A DNA stretch of 64,000 nt, taken from Piromyces finnis finn. Taxonomy: Eukaryota; Fungi; Neocallimastigomycota. This document shows, one piece after another, positions 28,154 to 43,695 of this stretch. The first letter of the stretch is position 1. Every line of letters begins with the position of its first letter. The notes under the pieces are model-generated. The model worked only from the letters and a program-made list of their open reading frames with translations. It ran no database searches and was not told where the DNA came from. Where the stretch lies: contig MCFH01000033.1 of NCBI GenBank assembly GCA_002104945.1, positions 1 to 64,000 of the forward strand, written 5' to 3'. The position numbers and the translations under genes are program-made.

Positions 28154-30036
28154 ATGAAATTTAACAAATTATTATTATCATTCTTTGCTTCCGTTGCATT
28201 AGCTTTACCAAGTAAGAAAGTTATACATTTAACATTTCAAGAAAAACAAAATATATTATAAAAAATATAAATGAATATTTAAACTTGAATATATATTTAT
28301 ATAATAAAAAAATAAATATTAATAAAAATTTTTTATTTTTTTTTTTTTTAAAAATAATATTTACATTAAATATAAAACAAACAACAAAACGACAAAAAAA
28401 AAAAAAAATATATATATATATAAACTATTATTTAAATAAAGTTAAAGATAAAGATGGAAGATATTATGTTAAACGTGGTAATAAACAATTTTATATTCCA
28501 AATGAATTAAGAAGTAACAATTTCGATAATAATGCTAGTAATTGGTCATTTGCTCGTAGTAAAGCTTCTGAAGATTTCATTCTTTTCTGGGAACCAGGAT
28601 TTGGAACAAATCCACAAGCTGCACCAGCTAATTTAAGATTTGATGTTGATGATGTTTTAGCTAAAGCTGAAAAATTCTTTGATTATTATAAAAATACCTT
28701 AAAATTTATTGAAGGAAAATCTCAAACTGAAACATACAAAATGAGTATATGGATTAAATATCAAACAGAATGGTTAGCCACTGGTTCTGGTTATGATAAT
28801 GTTGTTGGTGCCCTTTGGGTTAACCCAAGTACCATTCAACCAGTTGGTGGTACTATTGCTCATGAAATTGGACATACTTTCCAATACCAAGTTCATTGTG
28901 ATGGTAAGTACGGTTTCCGTGATCAAGATTATGTTGGTACTTATTGGGAAGTTTGTGCCCAATGGATGGCTTCTAGATTATATCCAGAAATGTTTTCTAA
29001 TACTGAATTTGAATTAGTTCCAAACAATTGTTGGAAACATCCATTACACGAAAACTTCCGTTACCAATCTATTCTTATGAATGAATACTGGAGTGAAAAG
29101 CATGGTATTGATATTATTGGTAGAATATGGAATGGTGCCGCTAACTTAGATGATCCATTTGATGCCTATAAGCGTGTAACTAAAATTGACCAAGCTGCTC
29201 TTAATGATGAAATGTTTTTAGTTGCCCAAAAGAATATTCTTTTTGATTACAAACATATGGGAAATGTTCTCAAACCATTCAGAAATCGTTACAATATTAA
29301 ACTTCAAACAAACAATGATGGAACTTATCAAATTCCACCTGAACAATGTACTCAAACTTATGGTTATGCTCCAATTCCACTTGAAATTCCAGCTGGTGGT
29401 AAGGTTACTGTCAAATTTACTGGTATAACAGGCAATCCTGCCTACCATACTATGCAAGATAGAGTTGCTGGATGGAGATACGGTTTTGTTGCTGTTACTG
29501 GAAATGGTGACACTGCTGAATATAGTAAAGCCTTTGTAGGAACTACCCAAACTAGTTCTGCTACTTTCACTGTTCCAAATGGTACAAAGAACTTATGGTT
29601 TATTGCCATGGGTGCACCAACCGAACATGTAAGACATCATTGGAAGGAAGGAGATAACTCTGGTGATGAACACTTCCCATGGAAGGCAGCTTTCTCTACC
29701 TGTATAAGAGGTCAAGCTTGTAATCCATCTATTCAAGTTGACAATAATGCTGAATCTGCTCCAAATGTTAACCCAGCCCCAGTTGCTAATCCAGCCCCAG
29801 TTGCTAATCCAGCTCCAGTTGCTAATCCAGCTCCAGTTGCTAATCCAGCTCCAGTTGCTAATCCAGCTCCAGTTGCTAATCCAGCTCCAGTTGCCAATCC
29901 AGCTCCAGTAACCAATACTATTCCAAGTTATAATTCAAATACCTTCCCATCCTTTTCTAATCCATTCGGAAATTTCGATTTTTCAAATTTCGATTTTTCA
30001 AGATTTAGAGGATCTTTTCCATTTTTTTTTAAATAA
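28154..30036 (+). CDS. Secreted zinc metallopeptidase-like protein (HExxH, DUF6055-like) with (PAPVAN)n tail; exons 28154-28211 and about 28442-30036
   Basis: MKFNKLLLSFFASVALALP signal exon with GTAAG donor and phase-compatible AG acceptors at 28441/28447/28453; motifs FILFWEPGFG and TIAHEIGHTFQY; 18-bp repeat at about 29770-29910. Confidence 0.8.
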
Positions 30037-30920: not shown

Positions 30921-33356
30921 TTAAATTTCGTCATCTGGGTATACTGGTTCTTCATAATCAACTTTAGCTTCAAGTGTTCTGATATGATCACCGTAAATAA
31001 CAGAATAGGTTTCACCTTCAATAATCTTTGGAGAGGTAACAAGAACTTCAGTGAATTTAGTTCTTGGCTTGTAGGTATGAATAATTTCACCCTTGCTATC
31101 CTTAACAACAATTTCATCACCAATTTCTTTTTCATAATTAAAAAGAGTACGTAAGTATGGTTGCTTAATGTATGAATTATCTTCTGGTTTCTTTTGAATT
31201 TCTTGTTGTTCAAGAGAAACAGTTTCCTCTTTTGGTTGTTCTTCTGGAACTGGACCGGCTGGAATTGGACCTTCTGGAATTGGACCTTCTGGAATTGGAC
31301 CTTCTGGAATTGGACCTTCTGGAGCTGGACCGGCTGGACCACCACCATTAAACATCTTAAGTAATTCTTCGAGTTCTTCATCAGTTTTATCCTTGAACAT
31401 TTTCTTAATATCTTTAATAGTCATTTCTCTTGGTGGCTTTGGGGTATCTAAGCCAGCAGCAGCAACAATGACTGTTGCACCATTATCAATAGTGTTTGAA
31501 CCATCAGAATCTAAAGCACACATGTTACCAAAGATATCACCTTCAGCATTATCAATGTAAATTTGAGCATTACCACCGATGTAAAGAGAACCGTTAGCAT
31601 CAAGACCATCAGTGTTAAAACCATCTACGTAAAGACGAAGTTTACCACCAGTGACTCTGATGTAAACTTGTTTATCATTCTTACGAGATTTAACTGGTGG
31701 ACCCTTTGGATCTTTGAATGGATCGTTTATAATCGGAATACCAGTTGGAACTGGTCTAATATATCCAGTATATTCTTCGGTTTGGGTTGGTTCTTCTTCA
31801 ACAGCAATAGTTGTAGCGTAATATTCAGTAACAGTAATTTCTTCTTCAGTTACAGTTGGTCTAGTATCTTCAGTAGAATCTTCAGTTACAGTTGGTCTAA
31901 TATCTTCAGTAGAATCTTCAGTTGCAGTTGGTTCTTCCCCAGCAGTAACAGTTACAGTGTAGTATTCAATAACATATACAGGTTTACAATAACCAGCATT
32001 TATTAAAATTTCTTCATCAGAATACGCTTCATCATAAGGCAATTCTTCATCAGAATACGCTTCATCATTAGACTCATTAGGTATTTCTTCATTAGAATAC
32101 GCTTCATCATTAGACTCATTAGGCATTTCTTCATCAGAATACGCTTCATCATTAGACTCATTAGGCATTTCTTCATCATTAGATTCAAGAAGAAGTTCAG
32201 AGTCTGGATTTTTTTCATCATCTACATCACTATCCATTTCATCTTCTAAATAGATTTTTTCATTAGATCCAATAGGACGATTAATATAGGTAGTTTCTTC
32301 ATCCGAATCTACTGAATAATCAAAATATGTATATTCTTCATCAGAATAAATTCCTTCAAAATAGGTTTTATTGTTATTGATATCGGCATTACTGTCAACC
32401 TTTTTTTTTCCACCAGTTGGAATTTTAGAAGCATTAATACCATCATCTGTAGTTTCAAGAACAATATCTCCATCTGTAATATCAATCATTTGACCTTCAA
32501 TACCTTCGGCACATTCCTTAACTTCAATGTAACCACCATTGATAGATAAGTGAGTTTCTGCATGAATACCATCATTGTCACATTTGACAACTACCTTACC
32601 ACCATCAATAACAATGAATCCCTTTTCTGGATCATCATCCTTGGTGACCTTAATACCAGAGTTTCCGGCTTTAACATTAATATCGGCTTCCTTAATAGAA
32701 ATAGAATTCTTAGCCTTAATACCTTTTCCCTTGGCATTAACATCTATCTTACCAGACACAAACTTGATAGCTTTCTTAGATCTGATGGCTTCATCGAATT
32801 TACCATCAACAGAAAGTGAACCCTTACCATTGAAAGTAAGATTGTCATTGACATATATACAAGCATTTGGTGACTTGGTTTCGTCTTCAGCAGCATCTTC
32901 AGAAACAGCAACTGCTGGGTAATTGGTTGAATCATTGAAAACGTTTTCACCTTCAGTGGTAATAATAATTTTCTTTGCCTTTTCACCGTAAAAGGCTGGT
33001 CCATTATCACTACTGATAGTAGCGTTTCTTAAGACAAGGTGAACAAAATCATTCTTTTTAGCCTTGACATTAAGTTGACCCTTTAAATCACCATCGAAGA
33101 TATAAGTACCAGCATTAGTAATGGTAACCTTTCCTTCTTCGACTAAAACACTTGAACCAGTTGAAATACAAGAATTTCCGTTACAGTGAATTCCAATACT
33201 CTTTTCGTCATATAATTCTTCTAAATCAATAGAATCATATTTACCAGAGATTGGACCTGGAGTTAAAATAAGTTCTTCTCCTTGATTTTCAGCATTTACT
33301 GAATTGAATAAGAATATAGTTAATAAAGTATTTATTAATTGTTTGTTGAATTTCAT
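30921..33356 (-). CDS. Secreted carbohydrate-binding beta-helix protein (DUF4353 / Cthe_2159-like), intact copy A
   Basis: Signal peptide; KVTITNAGTYIFDG, VHLVLRNATI, NDNLTFNGKGSL, DDGIHA, EGIEG, DDGINA, DGLDANG motifs; long acidic insert. Confidence 0.85.
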   Translation of the reverse strand: MKFNKQLINTLLTIFLFNSVNAENQGEELILTPGPISGKYDSIDLEELYDEKSIGIHCNGNSCISTGSSVLVEEGKVTITNAGTYIFDGDLKGQLNVKAKKNDFVHLVLRNATISSDNGPAFYGEKAKKIIITTEGENVFNDSTNYPAVAVSEDAAEDETKSPNACIYVNDNLTFNGKGSLSVDGKFDEAIRSKKAIKFVSGKIDVNAKGKGIKAKNSISIKEADINVKAGNSGIKVTKDDDPEKGFIVIDGGKVVVKCDNDGIHAETHLSINGGYIEVKECAEGIEGQMIDITDGDIVLETTDDGINASKIPTGGKKKVDSNADINNNKTYFEGIYSDEEYTYFDYSVDSDEETTYINRPIGSNEKIYLEDEMDSDVDDEKNPDSELLLESNDEEMPNESNDEAYSDEEMPNESNDEAYSNEEIPNESNDEAYSDEELPYDEAYSDEEILINAGYCKPVYVIEYYTVTVTAGEEPTATEDSTEDIRPTVTEDSTEDTRPTVTEEEITVTEYYATTIAVEEEPTQTEEYTGYIRPVPTGIPIINDPFKDPKGPPVKSRKNDKQVYIRVTGGKLRLYVDGFNTDGLDANGSLYIGGNAQIYIDNAEGDIFGNMCALDSDGSNTIDNGATVIVAAAGLDTPKPPREMTIKDIKKMFKDKTDEELEELLKMFNGGGPAGPAPEGPIPEGPIPEGPIPEGPIPAGPVPEEQPKEETVSLEQQEIQKKPEDNSYIKQPYLRTLFNYEKEIGDEIVVKDSKGEIIHTYKPRTKFTEVLVTSPKIIEGETYSVIYGDHIRTLEAKVDYEEPVYPDDEI

Positions 33357-36778: not shown

Positions 36779-38739
36779 ATGAAATTCAACAAACAATTAA
36801 TAAATACTTTATTAACTATATTCTTATTCAATTCAGTAAATGCTGAAAATCAAGGAGAAGAACTTATTTTAACTCCAGGTCCAATCTCTGGTAAATATGA
36901 TTCTATTGATTTAGAAGAATTATATGACGAAAAGAGTATTGGAATTCACTGTAACGGAAACTCTTGTATTTCAACTGGTTCAAGTGTTTTAGTCGAAGAA
37001 GGAAAGGTTACCATTACTAATGCTGGTACTTATATCTTCGATGGTGATTTAAAGGGTCAACTTAATGTCAAGGCTAAAAAGAATGATTTTGTTCACCTTG
37101 TCTTAAGAAACGCTACTATCAGTAGTGATAATGGACCAGCCTTTTACGGTGAAAAGGCAAAGAAAATTATTATTACCACTGAAGGTGAAAACGTTTTCAA
37201 TGATTCAACCAATTACCCAGCAGTTGCTGTTTCTGAAGATGCTGCTGAAGACGAAACCAAGTCACCAAATGCTTGTATATATGTCAATGACAATCTTACT
37301 TTCAATGGTAAGGGTTCACTTTCTGTTGATGGTAAATTCGATGAAGCCATCAGATCTAAGAAAGCTATCAAGTTTGTGTCTGGTAAGATAGATGTTAATG
37401 CCAAGGGAAAAGGTATTAAGGCTAAGAATTCTATTTCTATTAAGGAAGCCGATATTAATGTTAAAGCCGGAAACTCTGGTATTAAGGTCACCAAGGATGA
37501 TGATCCAGAAAAGGGATTCATTGTTATTGATGGTGGTAAGGTAGTTGTCAAATGTGACAATGATGGTATTCATGCAGAAACTCACTTATCTATCAATGGT
37601 GGTTACATTGAAGTTAAGGAATGTGCCGAAGGTATTGAAGGTCAAATGATTGATATTACAGATGGAGATATTGTTCTTGAAACTACAGATGATGGTATTA
37701 ATGCTTCTAAAATTCCAACTGGTGGAAAAAAAAGGTTGTTCGTCGTGATATTGATGACAATGACTCTGATGAAGAAGAAGCTGCTGATGTTGGTAGTTCA
37801 GTTGAAGTTGCCGAAGAAGAAGATTCTAATGATGAAGAAGAAATTACTGTTACTGAATATTACACTACAACTATTGCTGTTGAAGAAGAACCAACCCAAA
37901 CCGAAAATACTGAACCAGCTCCAATTGATCCATTTAAGGATCCAAATGGTCCACCATCAGATGATGATCCATTCAAAGATCCAAAGGGTCCACCAGTTAA
38001 ATCTCGTAAGAATGATAAACAAGTTTACATCAGAGTCACTGGTGGTAAACTTCGTCTTTACGTAGATGGTTTTAACACTGATGGTCTTGATGCTAACGGT
38101 TCTCTTTACATCGGTGGTAATGCTCAAATTTACATTGATAATGCTGAAGGTGATATCTTTGGTAACATGTGTGCTTTAGATTCTGATGGTTCAAACACTA
38201 TTGATAATGGTGCAACAGTCATTGTTGCTGCTGCTGGCTTAGATACCCCAAAGCCACCAAGAGAAATGACTATTAAAGATATTAAGAAAATGTTCAAGGA
38301 TAAAACTGATTAAGAACTCGAAGAATTACTTAAGATGTTTAATGGTAGTGGTCCAGCCGGTCCAGTTCCAGAAGGTCCAGCTCCAGAAGGTCCAATTCCA
38401 GAAGGTCCAGTTCCAGAAGAACAACCAAAAGAGGAAACTGTTTCTCTTGAACAACAAGAAATTCAAAAGAAACCAGAAGATAATTCATACATTAAGCAAC
38501 CATACTTACGTACTCTTTTTAATTATGAAAAAGAAATTGGTGATGAAATTGTTGTTAAGGATAGCAAGGGTGAAATTATTCATACCTACAAGCCAAGAAC
38601 TAAATTCACTGAAGTTCTTGTTACCTCTCCAAAGATTATTGAAGGTGAAACCTATTCTGTTATTTACGGTGATCATATCAGAACACTTGAAGCTAAAGTT
38701 GATTATGAAGAACCAGTATACCCAGATGATGAAATTTAA
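36779..38739 (+). pseudogene. DUF4353-like copy B, disrupted
   Basis: N-terminal protein identical to copy A up to GGKK. It has 8 vs 9 A at 37726-37733 (frameshift) and GAA to TAA at 38311-38313. Confidence 0.8.
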
Positions 38740-39497: not shown

Positions 39498-42400
39498 TTA
39501 ACAGGTCTGAATACCACACCATTGATTATTTTCTAATCCCCATGGTCCACTTTCATCGGTGTAGATGATATCTTGATGATGACAACATGGATAGCCTAAG
39601 GATTCTGACCAACAAGAACAAGTTGATACTGAACTTTTAATAATACACCAATCATTGTTTTCAACTCCCCAATTAACATCATCGGTGTAAACAATGGTGG
39701 TGGTGGTCTTACAATATGAATAACCATTGACTTGATCCTGATCCTGATTTTGATTTTCATAACAGGCGTAGGATATACTACACCAGGCATTATTTTCAAC
39801 ACCATAGTCTCCATAGGAATCACTTTCAATAATAGTACAATATTTACAACATGGATAACCTAGTTTTTTTTCTTCACTAAAACAAGAATAGGTAGTGGTA
39901 TGGGTTGGTTGGGCCTGAACTGTGGTGGTGGTCTTTTTTGAGGTGGTAGGTATTGTGGTGGTCATTGTTTTCTTTATGGTAGTGGTGGTGGAAGGCTTAA
40001 CAGCATAATTTAAAGGAGCAATTCCGTTTGATGGATAGGCAGAAAGAAGAGCATTATATTGAGAACTATTAATTGGAATGACATAACCATGACGTGGAGT
40101 AAAATTAAAACTATAACTGTTACGATTGACAGTTTTAAAGTTTACAAGATCAGTGGTTTCTTGCATAACATAATAGCCATTACCATAGGCATCAGACATC
40201 ATAAGCCATTTATTGGTACCTTGAAGTTGATAAATATTAGGTCCTTCAACACCAATATTTCCTTCAGAAACTTGTTTTATTTCACTGTATGGACCACTTG
40301 CGTGACTAGCGGTAGCTAAATAAATACGTTTGTTGGTTTCATTTTTATAATACATGTAATATTTATTGTTTTGGAAAATAATATCGGAATCAATGGCATC
40401 ATTACCGTTACTTGGAGCAAATAACAATTGTGGGGCTGTATCTAATTTTTGCATATTCTTACTGTAGGCATAGTACATAATGGTTCGGTTATCACGACCA
40501 GGGACTCGGGCAGCAAAATAAATCATGTAGGAATCTTTTTCAGGATCATAGATGGCTTGAGGAGCCCAGGCACGATCAGCTCCTTGCATTAAAGGATACT
40601 TATTAGCAATTTCTATACTACTTTCATTCGTCCAATGAATAAGATCAGAGGATTTTGCACTTAAAATATTACGATTACTATTCCAACCTAAAGCAGATTT
40701 CATATCTGTTGCTAATAAATAGTAATATCCATCCTTTCCTTTAAAAATATATGGATCACGTAAACATCCAGTACCTACACTTGATTTCCATACTTCCTTT
40801 CCATTATTAAGAGCTTTAAAATGATAACCATCTGTACTAACAGCATAGGATAATCTTTCTTGTTCTGGTGCATTACCAAGGAAATAAGTAAATAAATAGG
40901 CTCCACCAGAATTAGTGTTTGAACTGCTACCGGTATTTAAAATGTAGAATTTTTGACCATCGCCACCCCAATAATCCCATTGATCAATGTTTGCTCCGTT
41001 ATCATAGCTAATATCATAAACATCAAGAGCAGCATTACCTGAACATTCTGCTGTAATGTAGTAGGCTCCTTCTACTTCATGTAAAATAAAACGTTGATCA
41101 GCTGTATTCTTGTATTCCGAAAGATAGATATTGTTACCATTTTTAGAATTTCCGTTTTCTACTGTCATGGCTAATTTATGGTTTTGTCCTGAAAGAATGG
41201 CAAACTTTCCATTGCCAGCACTTTCAAAGCGCCACACTTGTGAATTATCACTTAAATTTTCCCATTGGTGAACATTACCATTAGATGCAGCGGTAATGTA
41301 TTTTCCACTGAGAACAACCATAATAGCATAATCCTTTCCACTAACAACTTCAGCATTTCCAGCTCTACGTACAAGAGATCTTTTCTTAATATTACCAGAT
41401 GGTACGACATTTGAATCTGATAGGTTGAATCCATTTTGAGAAAGAAAAGCTAAAAGACCTTGGAAAGCGGCATTATTCTCAAAAGCAACAACATTGGTCT
41501 CTTTATCCTTGAAATCTGTAAGGGCACCATAGAAAAGATGTTCATTTTCATCATTAGATCCAAAAGTATTGAGTTTTTGATAAACTTTTGATGATCTAGT
41601 ATTAGCTCCAACAACAAAATCAATCTTTTCTGGATTATCACCAAGCATATAATCAATTTGTTTCTTGACAAAATTCATATACTGTTGACGTTTTGAATCC
41701 TTTTCTTTCATTAAAGATGTCATCATGGCTACTGTAAAAGCAGCATTAGAAGCATATTTATTAGCACCTTCTTGTGATAATTGTTCATCATACCATAAAT
41801 CACCTGAAGTAGTTGGATGATTTACCATGAAATCACTATGGGTTAAAGCTTCTTCAAAATATCTCTTTTCGCCTGTAGTTATAGCCATCAAAACATAGGA
41901 AGAAGCCTTTTTATCATAATAAGAAATTGGATTCTTTGAACCAAGGAATTTATTAGGATTACTTTCATCATATGGGTAATCCCAAATTTCATCAATGTCT
42001 TTCTTATAAACCTTTTCACCTGTTGCTTTATATAACCATGCAGCACTCCAAGCTAATTCATCAATAAAACCATTTCTTGAGGGATAATGTAATTTTGCAT
42101 CAGGAATGGAAACATCGTAATCGCCTCTATATTTATTGGCAAATTCGTAAAGTTCTTTACCATGTTGTAATAAATGATCAGCATAAATTGGATATTCATC
42201 TTTAAATACAAGAGAAGCAGCAACCTAAATATAATATTATATATATATTTAAATTTAAAAAATATTATTTTTATTAAATTTATAAAAAAATAAAAAAAAT
42301 ATTATATAATAACAATTAATAATAGTAATATATTTGTTCTTTGAAAAAAAAATAATTTTATTTTGATGTATAAAAAAAATATTTACTAAGGCAGCAGAAG

Positions 42401-43695
42401 TTTCGGCAGCAAGATCGGAACCTGGAGCAGATTCTGTAATTTTATAAGATGGATTATTCCAAGAATTATCATTTCCAACTTGACCATCTGTTATTTTTTT
42501 TATTTTTTATCAAATATACCAATTTATAAATTATAAATTTTTTAATTATAATTAAAGTATATATTATTATAAACTTACACAAAACATATTTATCAGTATG
42601 ACATTTAATAAGATAATCTGTTCCCCATTGAAGTAATTCTTTCATATCGTCCCATTGACCAGCTTTTTTATATCCATCCTTCCATTCTAAAGCACCCCAA
42701 GCTAAAACTGTGATAAAAAAAAAAAAAGTCGATTAAATGTTATTAAGTTAATCCCAAAATAATAAAATTATTTTAAACAATGGGTTTATGTTAAATATTT
42801 ACGAGTAAGGGAGCTAGCCTGTGGAAAATTAAATTTCACATTATTATTTCCATTATCTTAAAAAAATTTTTTATTATTTTTATCAATATTAATAATAATC
42901 TTTTATAATTTATTAATATATAAAAATTATATATTTAAAAATAATAATAACTCACAGTCTAAATATATATAATAAAATAATAAATATTAGTTTTTAATTT
43001 TTATAATATTCAATATTAATTTTTTTTTTTTTTTTAAATAAAACTATATCAATATATTTACTTACAACCACCAGTTAAATCAACTTTAATATCATCTGTA
43101 CTATCTATATCCTGATGCCATAAAATATCATTGTTAACGGGTAATATACCAGATCTTTGAGCTATCATAAAAAAAAATTATATTTTATAAAAGATTTTTA
43201 AAAATTAGGATTTTCAATTAAATTAATTATTTCACTTATAATATATTCAACACACTAAATTAAAAAAAAAAAAAACTTTAATGTTTAAATTCATCAACTT
43301 TATATATATTGTTATTAATATATTGAATTTTTTAAGAATTTGTTTCCTATATAGATTGAAATTCGATCTTAATTTTTAATGAAATTTTAATTTCATTTCA
43401 AAATTTTATTCTATTTTTTTTTTTAAAAAAAAAAAAAAATAAATGAAAATGAATGAATTATTGAAATATATTATTTCCTATCTCTCGTTTTTGGTTATTT
43501 ATATATACATTCGAGTTTTCTTTAAAAAATTTCATTTTGATTATATGGATTATTATATATATATATTATATTTTCAATAATACCTCTATAAAATTGAATA
43601 GAAAGTTCAAGATGATGAGCATAATCTTTAGATGCAGCTTTAATTAAAGCTGGTCCACAAATAAAAATTGTTGATATGATTTTACTAATTTTCAT
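39498..43695 (-). CDS. Modular cellulosomal protein: signal peptide, degenerate GH9, ricin-B lectin, GH43, Thr linker, three fungal dockerin repeats (middle one degenerate); predicted 1073 aa
   Basis: Exons 43695-43584, 43161-43066, 42958-42956, 42856-42803, 42707-42579, 42487-42387, 42224-39498, all GT-AG, total 3222 nt and in frame. GH9 motifs AQRSG, DLTGG, VKFNFP, LAWG, PGSDLA, DELAW; GH43 LRDP, AIDS, VEGP; dockerins GYPCC..WGxEN..WC. Confidence 0.88.

Follow-up and report, generated by a model that had tools for sequence, protein, structure and literature searches.

Homologues of active glycoside hydrolases (GHs) that lack catalytic residues are well established, and they include the inactive GH10 xylan binder BACOVA_03431 of B. 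ovatus and the GH18 chitinase-like lectins (PMC4491172), as well as the GH28 polygalacturonase pseudoenzymes of beetles, which affect digestion (PMC8213348). These pseudo-glycosidases are expressed and retained (PMC4491172, PMC8213348), and they are stand-alone proteins, some with a proven binding or physiological role. Here we describe a gene of the anaerobic fungus Piromyces finnis finn that lies on the minus strand at positions 43695–39498 of a 64,000-nucleotide stretch of DNA (the window; positions 1 to 64,000 of contig MCFH01000033.1, assembly GCA_002104945.1), and whose product begins with a GH9 module that is almost certainly catalytically dead. Like the known examples this module is a relative of active enzymes without their catalytic residues; it differs from them in being one part of a multi-module dockerin-bearing enzyme, in having its cleft dismantled, and in that a role for it is only proposed. 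What marks the case is the family concerned, GH9, and its embedding in a fungal cellulosomal enzyme; in a literature search, which was not exhaustive, we found neither a dead GH9 described nor any remark on inactivity of the P. finnis protein (ORX46831.1 in NCBI, A0A1Y1V420 in UniProt; P0001 below).

Pfam matches show the layout of the protein to be a signal peptide, GH9, a ricin-B lectin module of the carbohydrate-binding module 13 type (CBM13), GH43, and three CBM10 dockerins. The Neocallimastix-type protein P0002 (1114 residues; its 90% cluster contains N. californiae ORX99600.1, N. lanati KAG4108104.1, and Neocallimastix sp. 'constans' KAL6605517.1) has the same domain order, the same GH9-type signal peptide, and 67% overall identity, and the GH9 parts of the two proteins are sisters in the GH9 tree (support 99/98); however, every GH9 motif is intact in P0002, including DAGD, the DH..W..PE loop, HHR, and NEVALDY. 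The CBM13-dockerin-GH43 proteins of Ruminococcus flavefaciens (P0045 and P0036) have a GH43 block that is 81–82% identical to the fungal one, with the three carboxylates invariant, but a type I dockerin separates their CBM13 from their GH43, an extra GH43-like part is found at the C-terminus, and there is no GH9. The structurally characterized T. fusca Cel9A/E4 (1js4, 1tf4) shares the (alpha/alpha)6 barrel, but in P. finnis substitutions or deletions have removed its Asp55, Asp58, Glu424, and the majority of its subsite residues, and no CBM3c follows the P. finnis barrel.

Loss of the GH9 active site

We aligned 27 GH9 sequences of anaerobic fungi with MAFFT, comprising two fragments and 25 full-length domains, and among the full-length domains the changes described here are found only in the P. 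finnis protein. In exon 4 (42856–42803) the base motif DAGDN is replaced by NGNNN, the four codons AAT GGA AAT AAT standing where DAGD is expected, so that both catalytic Asp residues are lost; a preliminary description of this DNA had read the motif correctly as YNGNNNVKF but ended it at 42835, whereas it spans 42856–42831. Near the end of the domain NEVALDY has become NVVAFEN, the catalytic acid Glu being replaced by the Val codon GTT at 41492–41490, just as that description had it. In exon 6 (42487–42387) YGQVGN is followed by a loop that is shorter by 12 residues, with loss of the His (His125) and the Glu of the DH..W..PE motif, and then by PGSDLAAETSAAL. In addition, SWDDK is changed to SYYDK, LSxWGSNRY to LSQEGANKY (W..R to E..K), and AVHHR to VYQKL (VHHR to YQKL; 41571–41585, minus strand), which removes the equivalents of His376 and Arg378. 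This last region had been described, together with the loop after YGQVG, as deleted; the loop deletion stands, but the HHR site is substituted rather than missing, and it is downstream of it that further deletions of 10, 7, and 4 residues occur.

The extent of these changes is unusual within the family. Of the 178 columns at which the 24 other full-length GH9 domains all agree, P0001 departs at 52 (12 of them by deletion) and retains the remaining 126, whereas P0002 departs at only four of 181 family-invariant columns, and the pattern in P0001 is therefore not a matter of chance. In the numbering of T. fusca Cel9A, which we verified against the alignment with 1js4, the positions lost are D55, D58, H125, D261, W313, R317, H376, R378, E424, and Y429, while Y206 and Y318 are kept; the individual changes include W260Y, D261Y, W313E, R317K, H376Q, and R378L, and H125 is deleted. 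Among these are residues that we take to be functional in Cel9A (His125, Trp313, Arg317, His376, Arg378, and others). Of the 12 invariant active-site positions 10 are affected, compared with 42 of the 166 invariant positions elsewhere in the domain (Fisher p = 9e-5).

Because both bases, the acid, and most of the subsite residues are gone, the module cannot be a GH9 hydrolase, and it is almost certainly catalytically dead, as had been proposed. By homology and fold it belongs to GH9, but the Asp pair, the acid Glu, and the subsite residues of the active enzymes are absent; a homologue of active enzymes without their essential catalytic residues is a pseudoenzyme. The names 'cellulase' and 'Six-hairpin glycosidase' under which the protein is deposited were given by homology, and for the GH9 part they are very likely wrong. 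Tallies of 'GH9 cellulases' from anaerobic fungi will take in such dead copies. Glucan binding is unlikely too, because substitutions have removed the aromatic and charged residues of the cleft (W313, W260, D261, R317, H376, and R378) and its loops are deleted; the module makes a poor candidate for a glucan binder, and the suggestion of the preliminary description that it might serve as one finds little encouragement here.

We give almost no credence to the idea that the module is still an enzyme acting through other residues, or that its dead motifs reflect an error of gene modelling or assembly. Nothing positive speaks for it, the UniRef name 'cellulase' resting on homology only, and neither the two Asp and the Glu nor His125, His376, and Arg378 remain. 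The exon model has only GT..AG introns and is reproduced by the public protein, and the first 400 residues of a published version match with one microexon-encoded Tyr added (discussed below; this portion of the published sequence is the part compared). We reject an artefact of assembly or gene model on the strength of that independent published sequence, which agrees.

In the GH9 alignment, P0020 follows in its first half the Cel9A-like clade and is identical in its second half to P0016 and P0017, and P0016 switches partner near its C-terminus. P0020 and P0016 are thus probably chimeric metatranscriptome assemblies, and chimeric assembly (P0020, P0016, P0017) would account for the zero-length branches in the GH9 tree.

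Predicted fold of the module

Exon 7 (42224–39498) begins with the C-terminal two thirds of the GH9 (42224–41406), which match Pfam PF00759 with E = 1.5e-37, and the small exons match successive parts of the same profile. For example, exon 2 (43161–43066) encodes the N-terminal segment AQRSG...DLTGG and corresponds to profile positions 15–52, although the conserved Arg residues of its NNRI.WR.DS stretch are substituted, and exon 5 (42707–42579) encodes the well-conserved helices LAWGALEW...CHTDKYVL (E = 1.5e-8, profile 73–111) and also matches GH9 structures. Endoglucanases of known structure match both halves of the module, among them 1js4 (3.8e-34) and 1ks8 (4.7e-34).

An AlphaFold2 model of residues 22–440, a check that the preliminary description had proposed, was built from a 47-sequence alignment and has a mean predicted local distance difference test score (pLDDT) of 87.5 and a predicted template modelling score (pTM) of 0.91. 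The poorly predicted stretches are confined to domain residues ~21–40, 112–120, and 351–390, and these are the loops that carry, or formerly carried, the catalytic motifs. The best Foldseek match is 1tf4 (T. fusca E4), with a template modelling (TM) score of 0.90 and 36% identity, and other GH9 enzymes follow. The GH9 barrel is thus predicted to be intact with only the active-site loops uncertain; since the homologues in the alignment are active enzymes and pull the prediction towards a barrel, this result speaks to compatibility with the fold and is not proof of folding. The module does not have the features of a carbohydrate-binding module derived from an enzyme cleft: the aromatic platform and the polar residues have been replaced, and the loops lining the cleft are either deleted or low in pLDDT.

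Active, dead, and excised forms of one gene

A third form of the gene lacks the GH9 altogether. P0034 (601 residues) consists of CBM13, GH43, and three CBM10 repeats, with a GH43 that is 92% identical to that of P0001, and its gene is present on metagenome contigs L002–L005 with no GH9 upstream. It nonetheless retains a signal-peptide exon homologous to that of P. finnis: on L003 this exon (2214–2298) encodes a GH9-type signal peptide ending in ...IEYVQR, has the same donor context as P. finnis exon 1 (AGAG/GTATT), and ends in the same derived Arg codon, AGA, at a position where all other anaerobic-fungal GH9s have a Glu. The entire GH9 is gone, and the exon is joined over a 640-nt intron (2299–2938) to an exon that starts at 2939 and opens in the linker (EEHTLVRRA...). 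The cluster member P0134 (650 residues, from transcript-derived contigs of ~2 kb) has exactly this junction, which confirms the splice and indicates that the GH9-less gene is expressed. The module is therefore dispensable in at least one lineage, and the case shows a final route by which a dead domain can be removed, with the signal-peptide exon spliced straight to the linker. We note that the L003 acceptor coincides with what in P. finnis is coding sequence of the linker, and the GH9 may therefore have gone either through a new splice site followed by decay or through a deletion.

The relationships among these genes were tested under nucleotide and codon models with the CBM13-GH43 codons. The topology uniting P0001 with P0034 is favoured (bootstrap proportion 0.71–0.81), that uniting P0001 with P0002 is rejected under a codon model (approximately unbiased test, p = 0.012), and the third is not rejected; a protein tree of the same region gave no resolution among the three fungal genes and the bacterial clade. 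The GH9-less gene is thus the probable closest relative of the C-terminal half of the P. finnis gene, and the common Arg codon suggests that excision followed an inactivation shared with P. finnis. As judged from the sequences, this is one ancestral fusion in three states: active in Neocallimastix, dead in P. finnis, and excised in another anaerobic fungus. Neither word-based protein searches nor a metagenome scan revealed a second dead orthologue, or anything closer than the Neocallimastix-type protein.

Selection and timing of the loss

We estimated the ratio of nonsynonymous (dN) to synonymous (dS) substitution rates, omega, for the separate modules. Alignment columns from the separate exons were pooled for the codon statistics, and codons split by introns were excluded. 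By Nei–Gojobori counting (NG86), pairwise omega between P0001 and P0002 is 0.26 for GH9, 0.11 for the ricin-B module, 0.15 for GH43, and 0.18 for the dockerins. The terminal branches of the GH9 tree measure 0.67 for P0001 and 0.13 for P0002, whereas in the CBM13-GH43 tree the P0001 branch is the shortest (0.054 versus 0.18), and the acceleration is therefore domain-specific and not lineage-wide.

A purpose-written Goldman–Yang (GY94) branch model with six taxa and 411 codon columns, using either F3x4 or F61 codon frequencies, gave an omega on the P. finnis branch of 0.114 against a background of 0.064 (F3x4), or 0.067 against 0.020 (F61). Neutrality of this branch (omega = 1) is rejected, with twice the log-likelihood difference (2dlnL) being 51 (p = 8e-13) under F3x4 and 24 (p = 9e-7) under F61, while the case against equality with the background is weak (p 0.03–0.04); the outcome is unchanged when the catalytic-motif codons are left out. 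A three-taxon NG86 comparison gives dS 0.42–0.50, dN 0.16, and omega ~0.35 for the P0001 branch, and dS 0.28–0.35, dN 0.05, and omega ~0.16 for the P0002 branch. Maximum likelihood (ML) and NG86 thus agree that omega is about doubled on the P. finnis branch and lies well below 1.

Because a branch average could mask a late neutral phase, the active-site codons were used as an internal clock, their rate being taken from NG86 counts since a likelihood fit on the 18 catalytic-motif codons alone is unstable. For the 11 active-site codons that are not deleted dN is 0.51. These changes fall wholly on the P. finnis branch, and their rate is approximately equal to the dS of that branch, which indicates that constraint on the active site was absent for most of its length; in the rest of the GH9, omega is ~0.1 (ML) to 0.3 (NG86). 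If the excess in omega instead reflected a neutral final phase, that phase would span ~4–25% of the branch and would replace at most about a quarter of the active-site residues, and the chance of observing 10 of 12 replacements at 24% of the branch is P = 3e-5. The simplest fit to these rates is an early inactivation, with free drift of the catalytic apparatus and relaxed but continuing constraint elsewhere. The preliminary description had named neutral decay, with dN/dS near 1, as the alternative to be examined, and by these estimates evolution after the loss of catalysis appears to have been non-neutral, the branch being a mixture of active and dead periods.

Explanations for the persistence of the module

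On balance, we think it probable that the GH9 is a relic that was inactivated early and whose fold is still under selection, persisting as a constrained remnant or a passive spacer. The ancestor would have been a bifunctional GH9-CBM13-GH43 enzyme, of which the form with an intact GH9 survives in Neocallimastix. Catalysis would have been lost early on the P. finnis branch, after which the residues of the active site and cleft drifted at a nearly neutral rate and in-frame deletions trimmed several conserved loops, some of them with residues of the catalytic motifs, while the (alpha/alpha)6 scaffold stayed under purifying selection. The working parts of the secreted, dockerin-bearing enzyme would now be the CBM13-GH43 block and the three CBM10 dockerins. 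As the barrel is the first part to be translated and to enter the secretory pathway, it presumably must fold if the protein is to be secreted and loaded onto the cellulosome, and it would be kept folded because a misfolding head of 416 residues would cost the whole enzyme. It may then serve as a passive folded N-terminal body or spacer and not as a glucan binder, and a spacer or folding role is possible. To excise it cleanly would take something uncommon, for example a new splice junction like that found in the relative.

Several observations weigh against this relic under continuing selection. The ML and NG86 estimates of omega on the P. finnis branch are ~3-fold apart, and dS is large (0.8–0.9 between P0001 and P0002). 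Changed sites are evenly spread across conservation classes, amounting to 29% of invariant, 24% of low-variability, and 27% of high-variability sites (in P0002 the corresponding values are 1%, 8%, and 9%), which looks like relaxed rather than scaffold-specific constraint. In a BLOSUM test, the residues substituted at invariant sites proved barely more conservative than expected of random mutation (p 0.04–0.09) and, together with the even spread, this means that part of the former constraint is clearly gone. The branch omega averages over active and dead periods, such that a late death would fit as well if the active site had then been under positive selection, and the searches described above revealed no second dead orthologue from which omega could be estimated for the dead period alone. 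Finally, the relative removed the module but kept the gene, which argues that the module has no essential role.

Some of these same observations are what would be expected of plain neutral decay, in which a recent death is followed by drift and the only reason for the frame and splice sites to last is that any stop or frameshift would take away the GH43 and dockerins. Selection on the downstream modules alone explains the open frame and the fact that all of the deletions are in frame, and both the spread of changed sites and the slight bias to conservative replacements sit comfortably with it, as does the outright loss of the module in a relative. Yet omega = 1 is rejected on the branch (2dlnL 24–51), a neutral phase short enough to match the overall rate leaves far too few active-site replacements, and 126 of the 178 family-invariant positions persist. 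We therefore regard simple drift as quite improbable.

The alternative that the barrel has been kept for a gained non-catalytic job, such as binding a new ligand in a reshaped cleft, contacting a cellulosome protein, or, in line with the spacer or chaperone role suggested in the preliminary description, helping to fold or position the GH43, has more to commend it. Omega on the P. finnis branch is far below 1 with or without the catalytic motifs, the barrel is predicted with high confidence, and the active site is almost entirely rewritten, with replacement at all 16 of the columns in motif runs (these columns were marked post hoc); BACOVA_03431, the GH18 lectins (PMC4491172), and the beetle GH28 pseudoenzymes (PMC8213348) provide precedents. 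However, the cleft has lost the residues through which glucan would be bound, its loops have been deleted or are predicted with low confidence, a close relative does without the whole module, the searches described above disclosed no second lineage in which the dead state is conserved, and the changes are not concentrated in any class of site. We consider such a gain of function rather unlikely, and the same doubt attaches to its more specific form, that the dead barrel now serves in binding, in docking, or as an intramolecular chaperone, and so helps the attached GH43 to act or to be assembled in the cellulosome. If this were nevertheless true it would be the first such use of the GH9 fold, with the active and excised versions as natural controls. 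The preliminary description had spoken of a purposely kept pseudo-enzyme; neutral decay, which it had named as a ground for refuting this, is rejected here, but purpose goes beyond the data for a module that is active in Neocallimastix and excised in a relative.

Returning to the constrained relic, we note that the three natural states (active, dead but folded, and excised) constitute a system in which to ask why dead domains persist in multi-module secreted enzymes, and that the options for persistence (folding and secretion, spacing, or a new role) are addressable. There is also an implication for engineering, as the CBM13-GH43-dockerin part is suggested to work when the GH9 is absent. A construct lacking the 416-residue barrel might be easier to express in a heterologous host, the whole protein being outside the soluble set of a published screen (PMC12421816).

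Gene model, microexon, and annotation

The exon model was read straight from the sequence and describes a single gene of seven exons, one of them a 3-nt microexon, with a coding sequence of 3222 nt. Exon 1 (43695–43584) contains the start codon, the signal peptide, and the first GH9 residues; exon 7 contains the rest of the GH9 followed by the ricin-B/CBM13, GH43, and CBM10 modules, and ends with the stop codon at 39500–39498. The introns, six in number as previously modelled and all of them GT..AG, are 91–422 nt in length with a G+C content of 6–18%, and the exons are colinear both with the Pfam GH9 profile and with solved GH9 structures, so that the frame and intron structure proposed earlier hold. 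The searches were run on the separate exons and on the public protein, which lacks the microexon Tyr, as a stand-in for the whole 1073-residue model.

Exon 3 is the microexon, ACT at 42958–42956 on the minus strand (AG/ACT/GTGAGT), and it encodes the second Tyr of GGYY. Without it the model equals the public protein P0001 exactly, residue for residue. The gene is thus already in NCBI and UniProt, and as Celsome_166 it is also in a published enzyme screen (PMC12421816 supplement), so that the earlier statement that annotation based on open reading frames (ORFs) misses it is incorrect. The list containing Celsome_166 was drawn from earlier work on transcriptionally upregulated and dockerin-fused proteins, and Celsome_166 was synthesised but is outside the 17 soluble proteins assayed (PMC12421816). 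Over the first 400 residues, the portion compared, its sequence is that of P0001 except at GGYYNGNNN, where it has one Tyr more than the genome model (PMC12421816). This is exactly the product of the ACT microexon, and a spliced transcript is therefore the likely source of the published sequence.

A comparable microexon, AG/ACT/GTAAGT, is present in the corresponding intron of an active P. finnis paralogue, P0007 (locus L013, ~1640–1660). Both public P. finnis models (P0001 and P0007) skip it, giving GGY, and the Neocallimastix 'constans' model P0052 reads into the intron at this site, giving GGCKYY; GGYYDAGD is found in nearly every other aligned homologue, including all of those traced to intron-free, transcript-like contigs. 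These comparisons of sequence point to a gene that is transcribed and spliced with six introns. We also note that two introns of the dead gene lie within the GH9 barrel (42225–42386, after ...SAAL, and 42488–42578, after ...KYVL), and that the active paralogue P0007 is without them, having a single exon from LAWG to the stop codon (L013 1868–3943).

Downstream modules and genomic context

Between the GH9 and the GH43 lies a ricin-B type lectin module similar to CBM13 (40941–41330, minus strand; Pfam RicinB_lectin_2, E = 2e-20), which was overlooked in the preliminary description and is near to that of R. flavefaciens P0045. The GH43 module follows at 40032–40925 (Pfam PF04616, E = 5e-15), and the protein ends with three CBM10 fungal dockerin repeats at 39501–39920 (Pfam CBM_10, E = 4.8e-33, in three stretches), both likewise on the minus strand. 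These dockerins and the N-terminal hydrophobic leader, which is common to other fungal GH9s, are the features expected of a fungal cellulosome component.

Three carboxylates reported earlier in the GH43 are present, namely Asp at 40757–40755 (RDP), Asp at 40391–40389 (IDS), and Glu at 40247–40245 (EGP), and all three motifs are invariant in seven GH43 homologues of 81–92% identity, including the bacterial ones. Their spacing fits what we take to be the GH43 base Asp, the pKa-modulating Asp, and the acid Glu. Single-sequence and profile searches of the PDB for mapping the residues onto solved GH43 structures yielded only weak, blade-ambiguous matches, and the assignment of the triad is thus founded on the Pfam match and on conservation, not on structure mapping. 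That the GH43 is active is a well-founded inference from these sequence features. The GH43 has an omega of 0.09–0.15 and, with the intact reading frame and the presence of the protein in the literature, this leads us to reject the reading of the whole gene as a pseudogene.

In our alignments the GH43 of the anaerobic fungi is 81–82% identical to those of bacteria of the R. flavefaciens type (P0045, P0036, and P0047), and the CBM13 is also visibly similar; this likeness, which extends over 40032–41330, points to recent transfer between kingdoms. The window is strongly AT-rich, with coding islands that are richer in G+C. The products of the neighbouring ORFs at 28285–30036 (plus strand), 30921–33356 (minus strand), and 36779–38065 (plus strand) are a DUF6055 protein (E = 1e-157) and two carbohydrate-binding proteins of the Cthe_2159 type (E ~1e-57), and the gene thus belongs to a small group of clustered plant-cell-wall genes of bacterial type.

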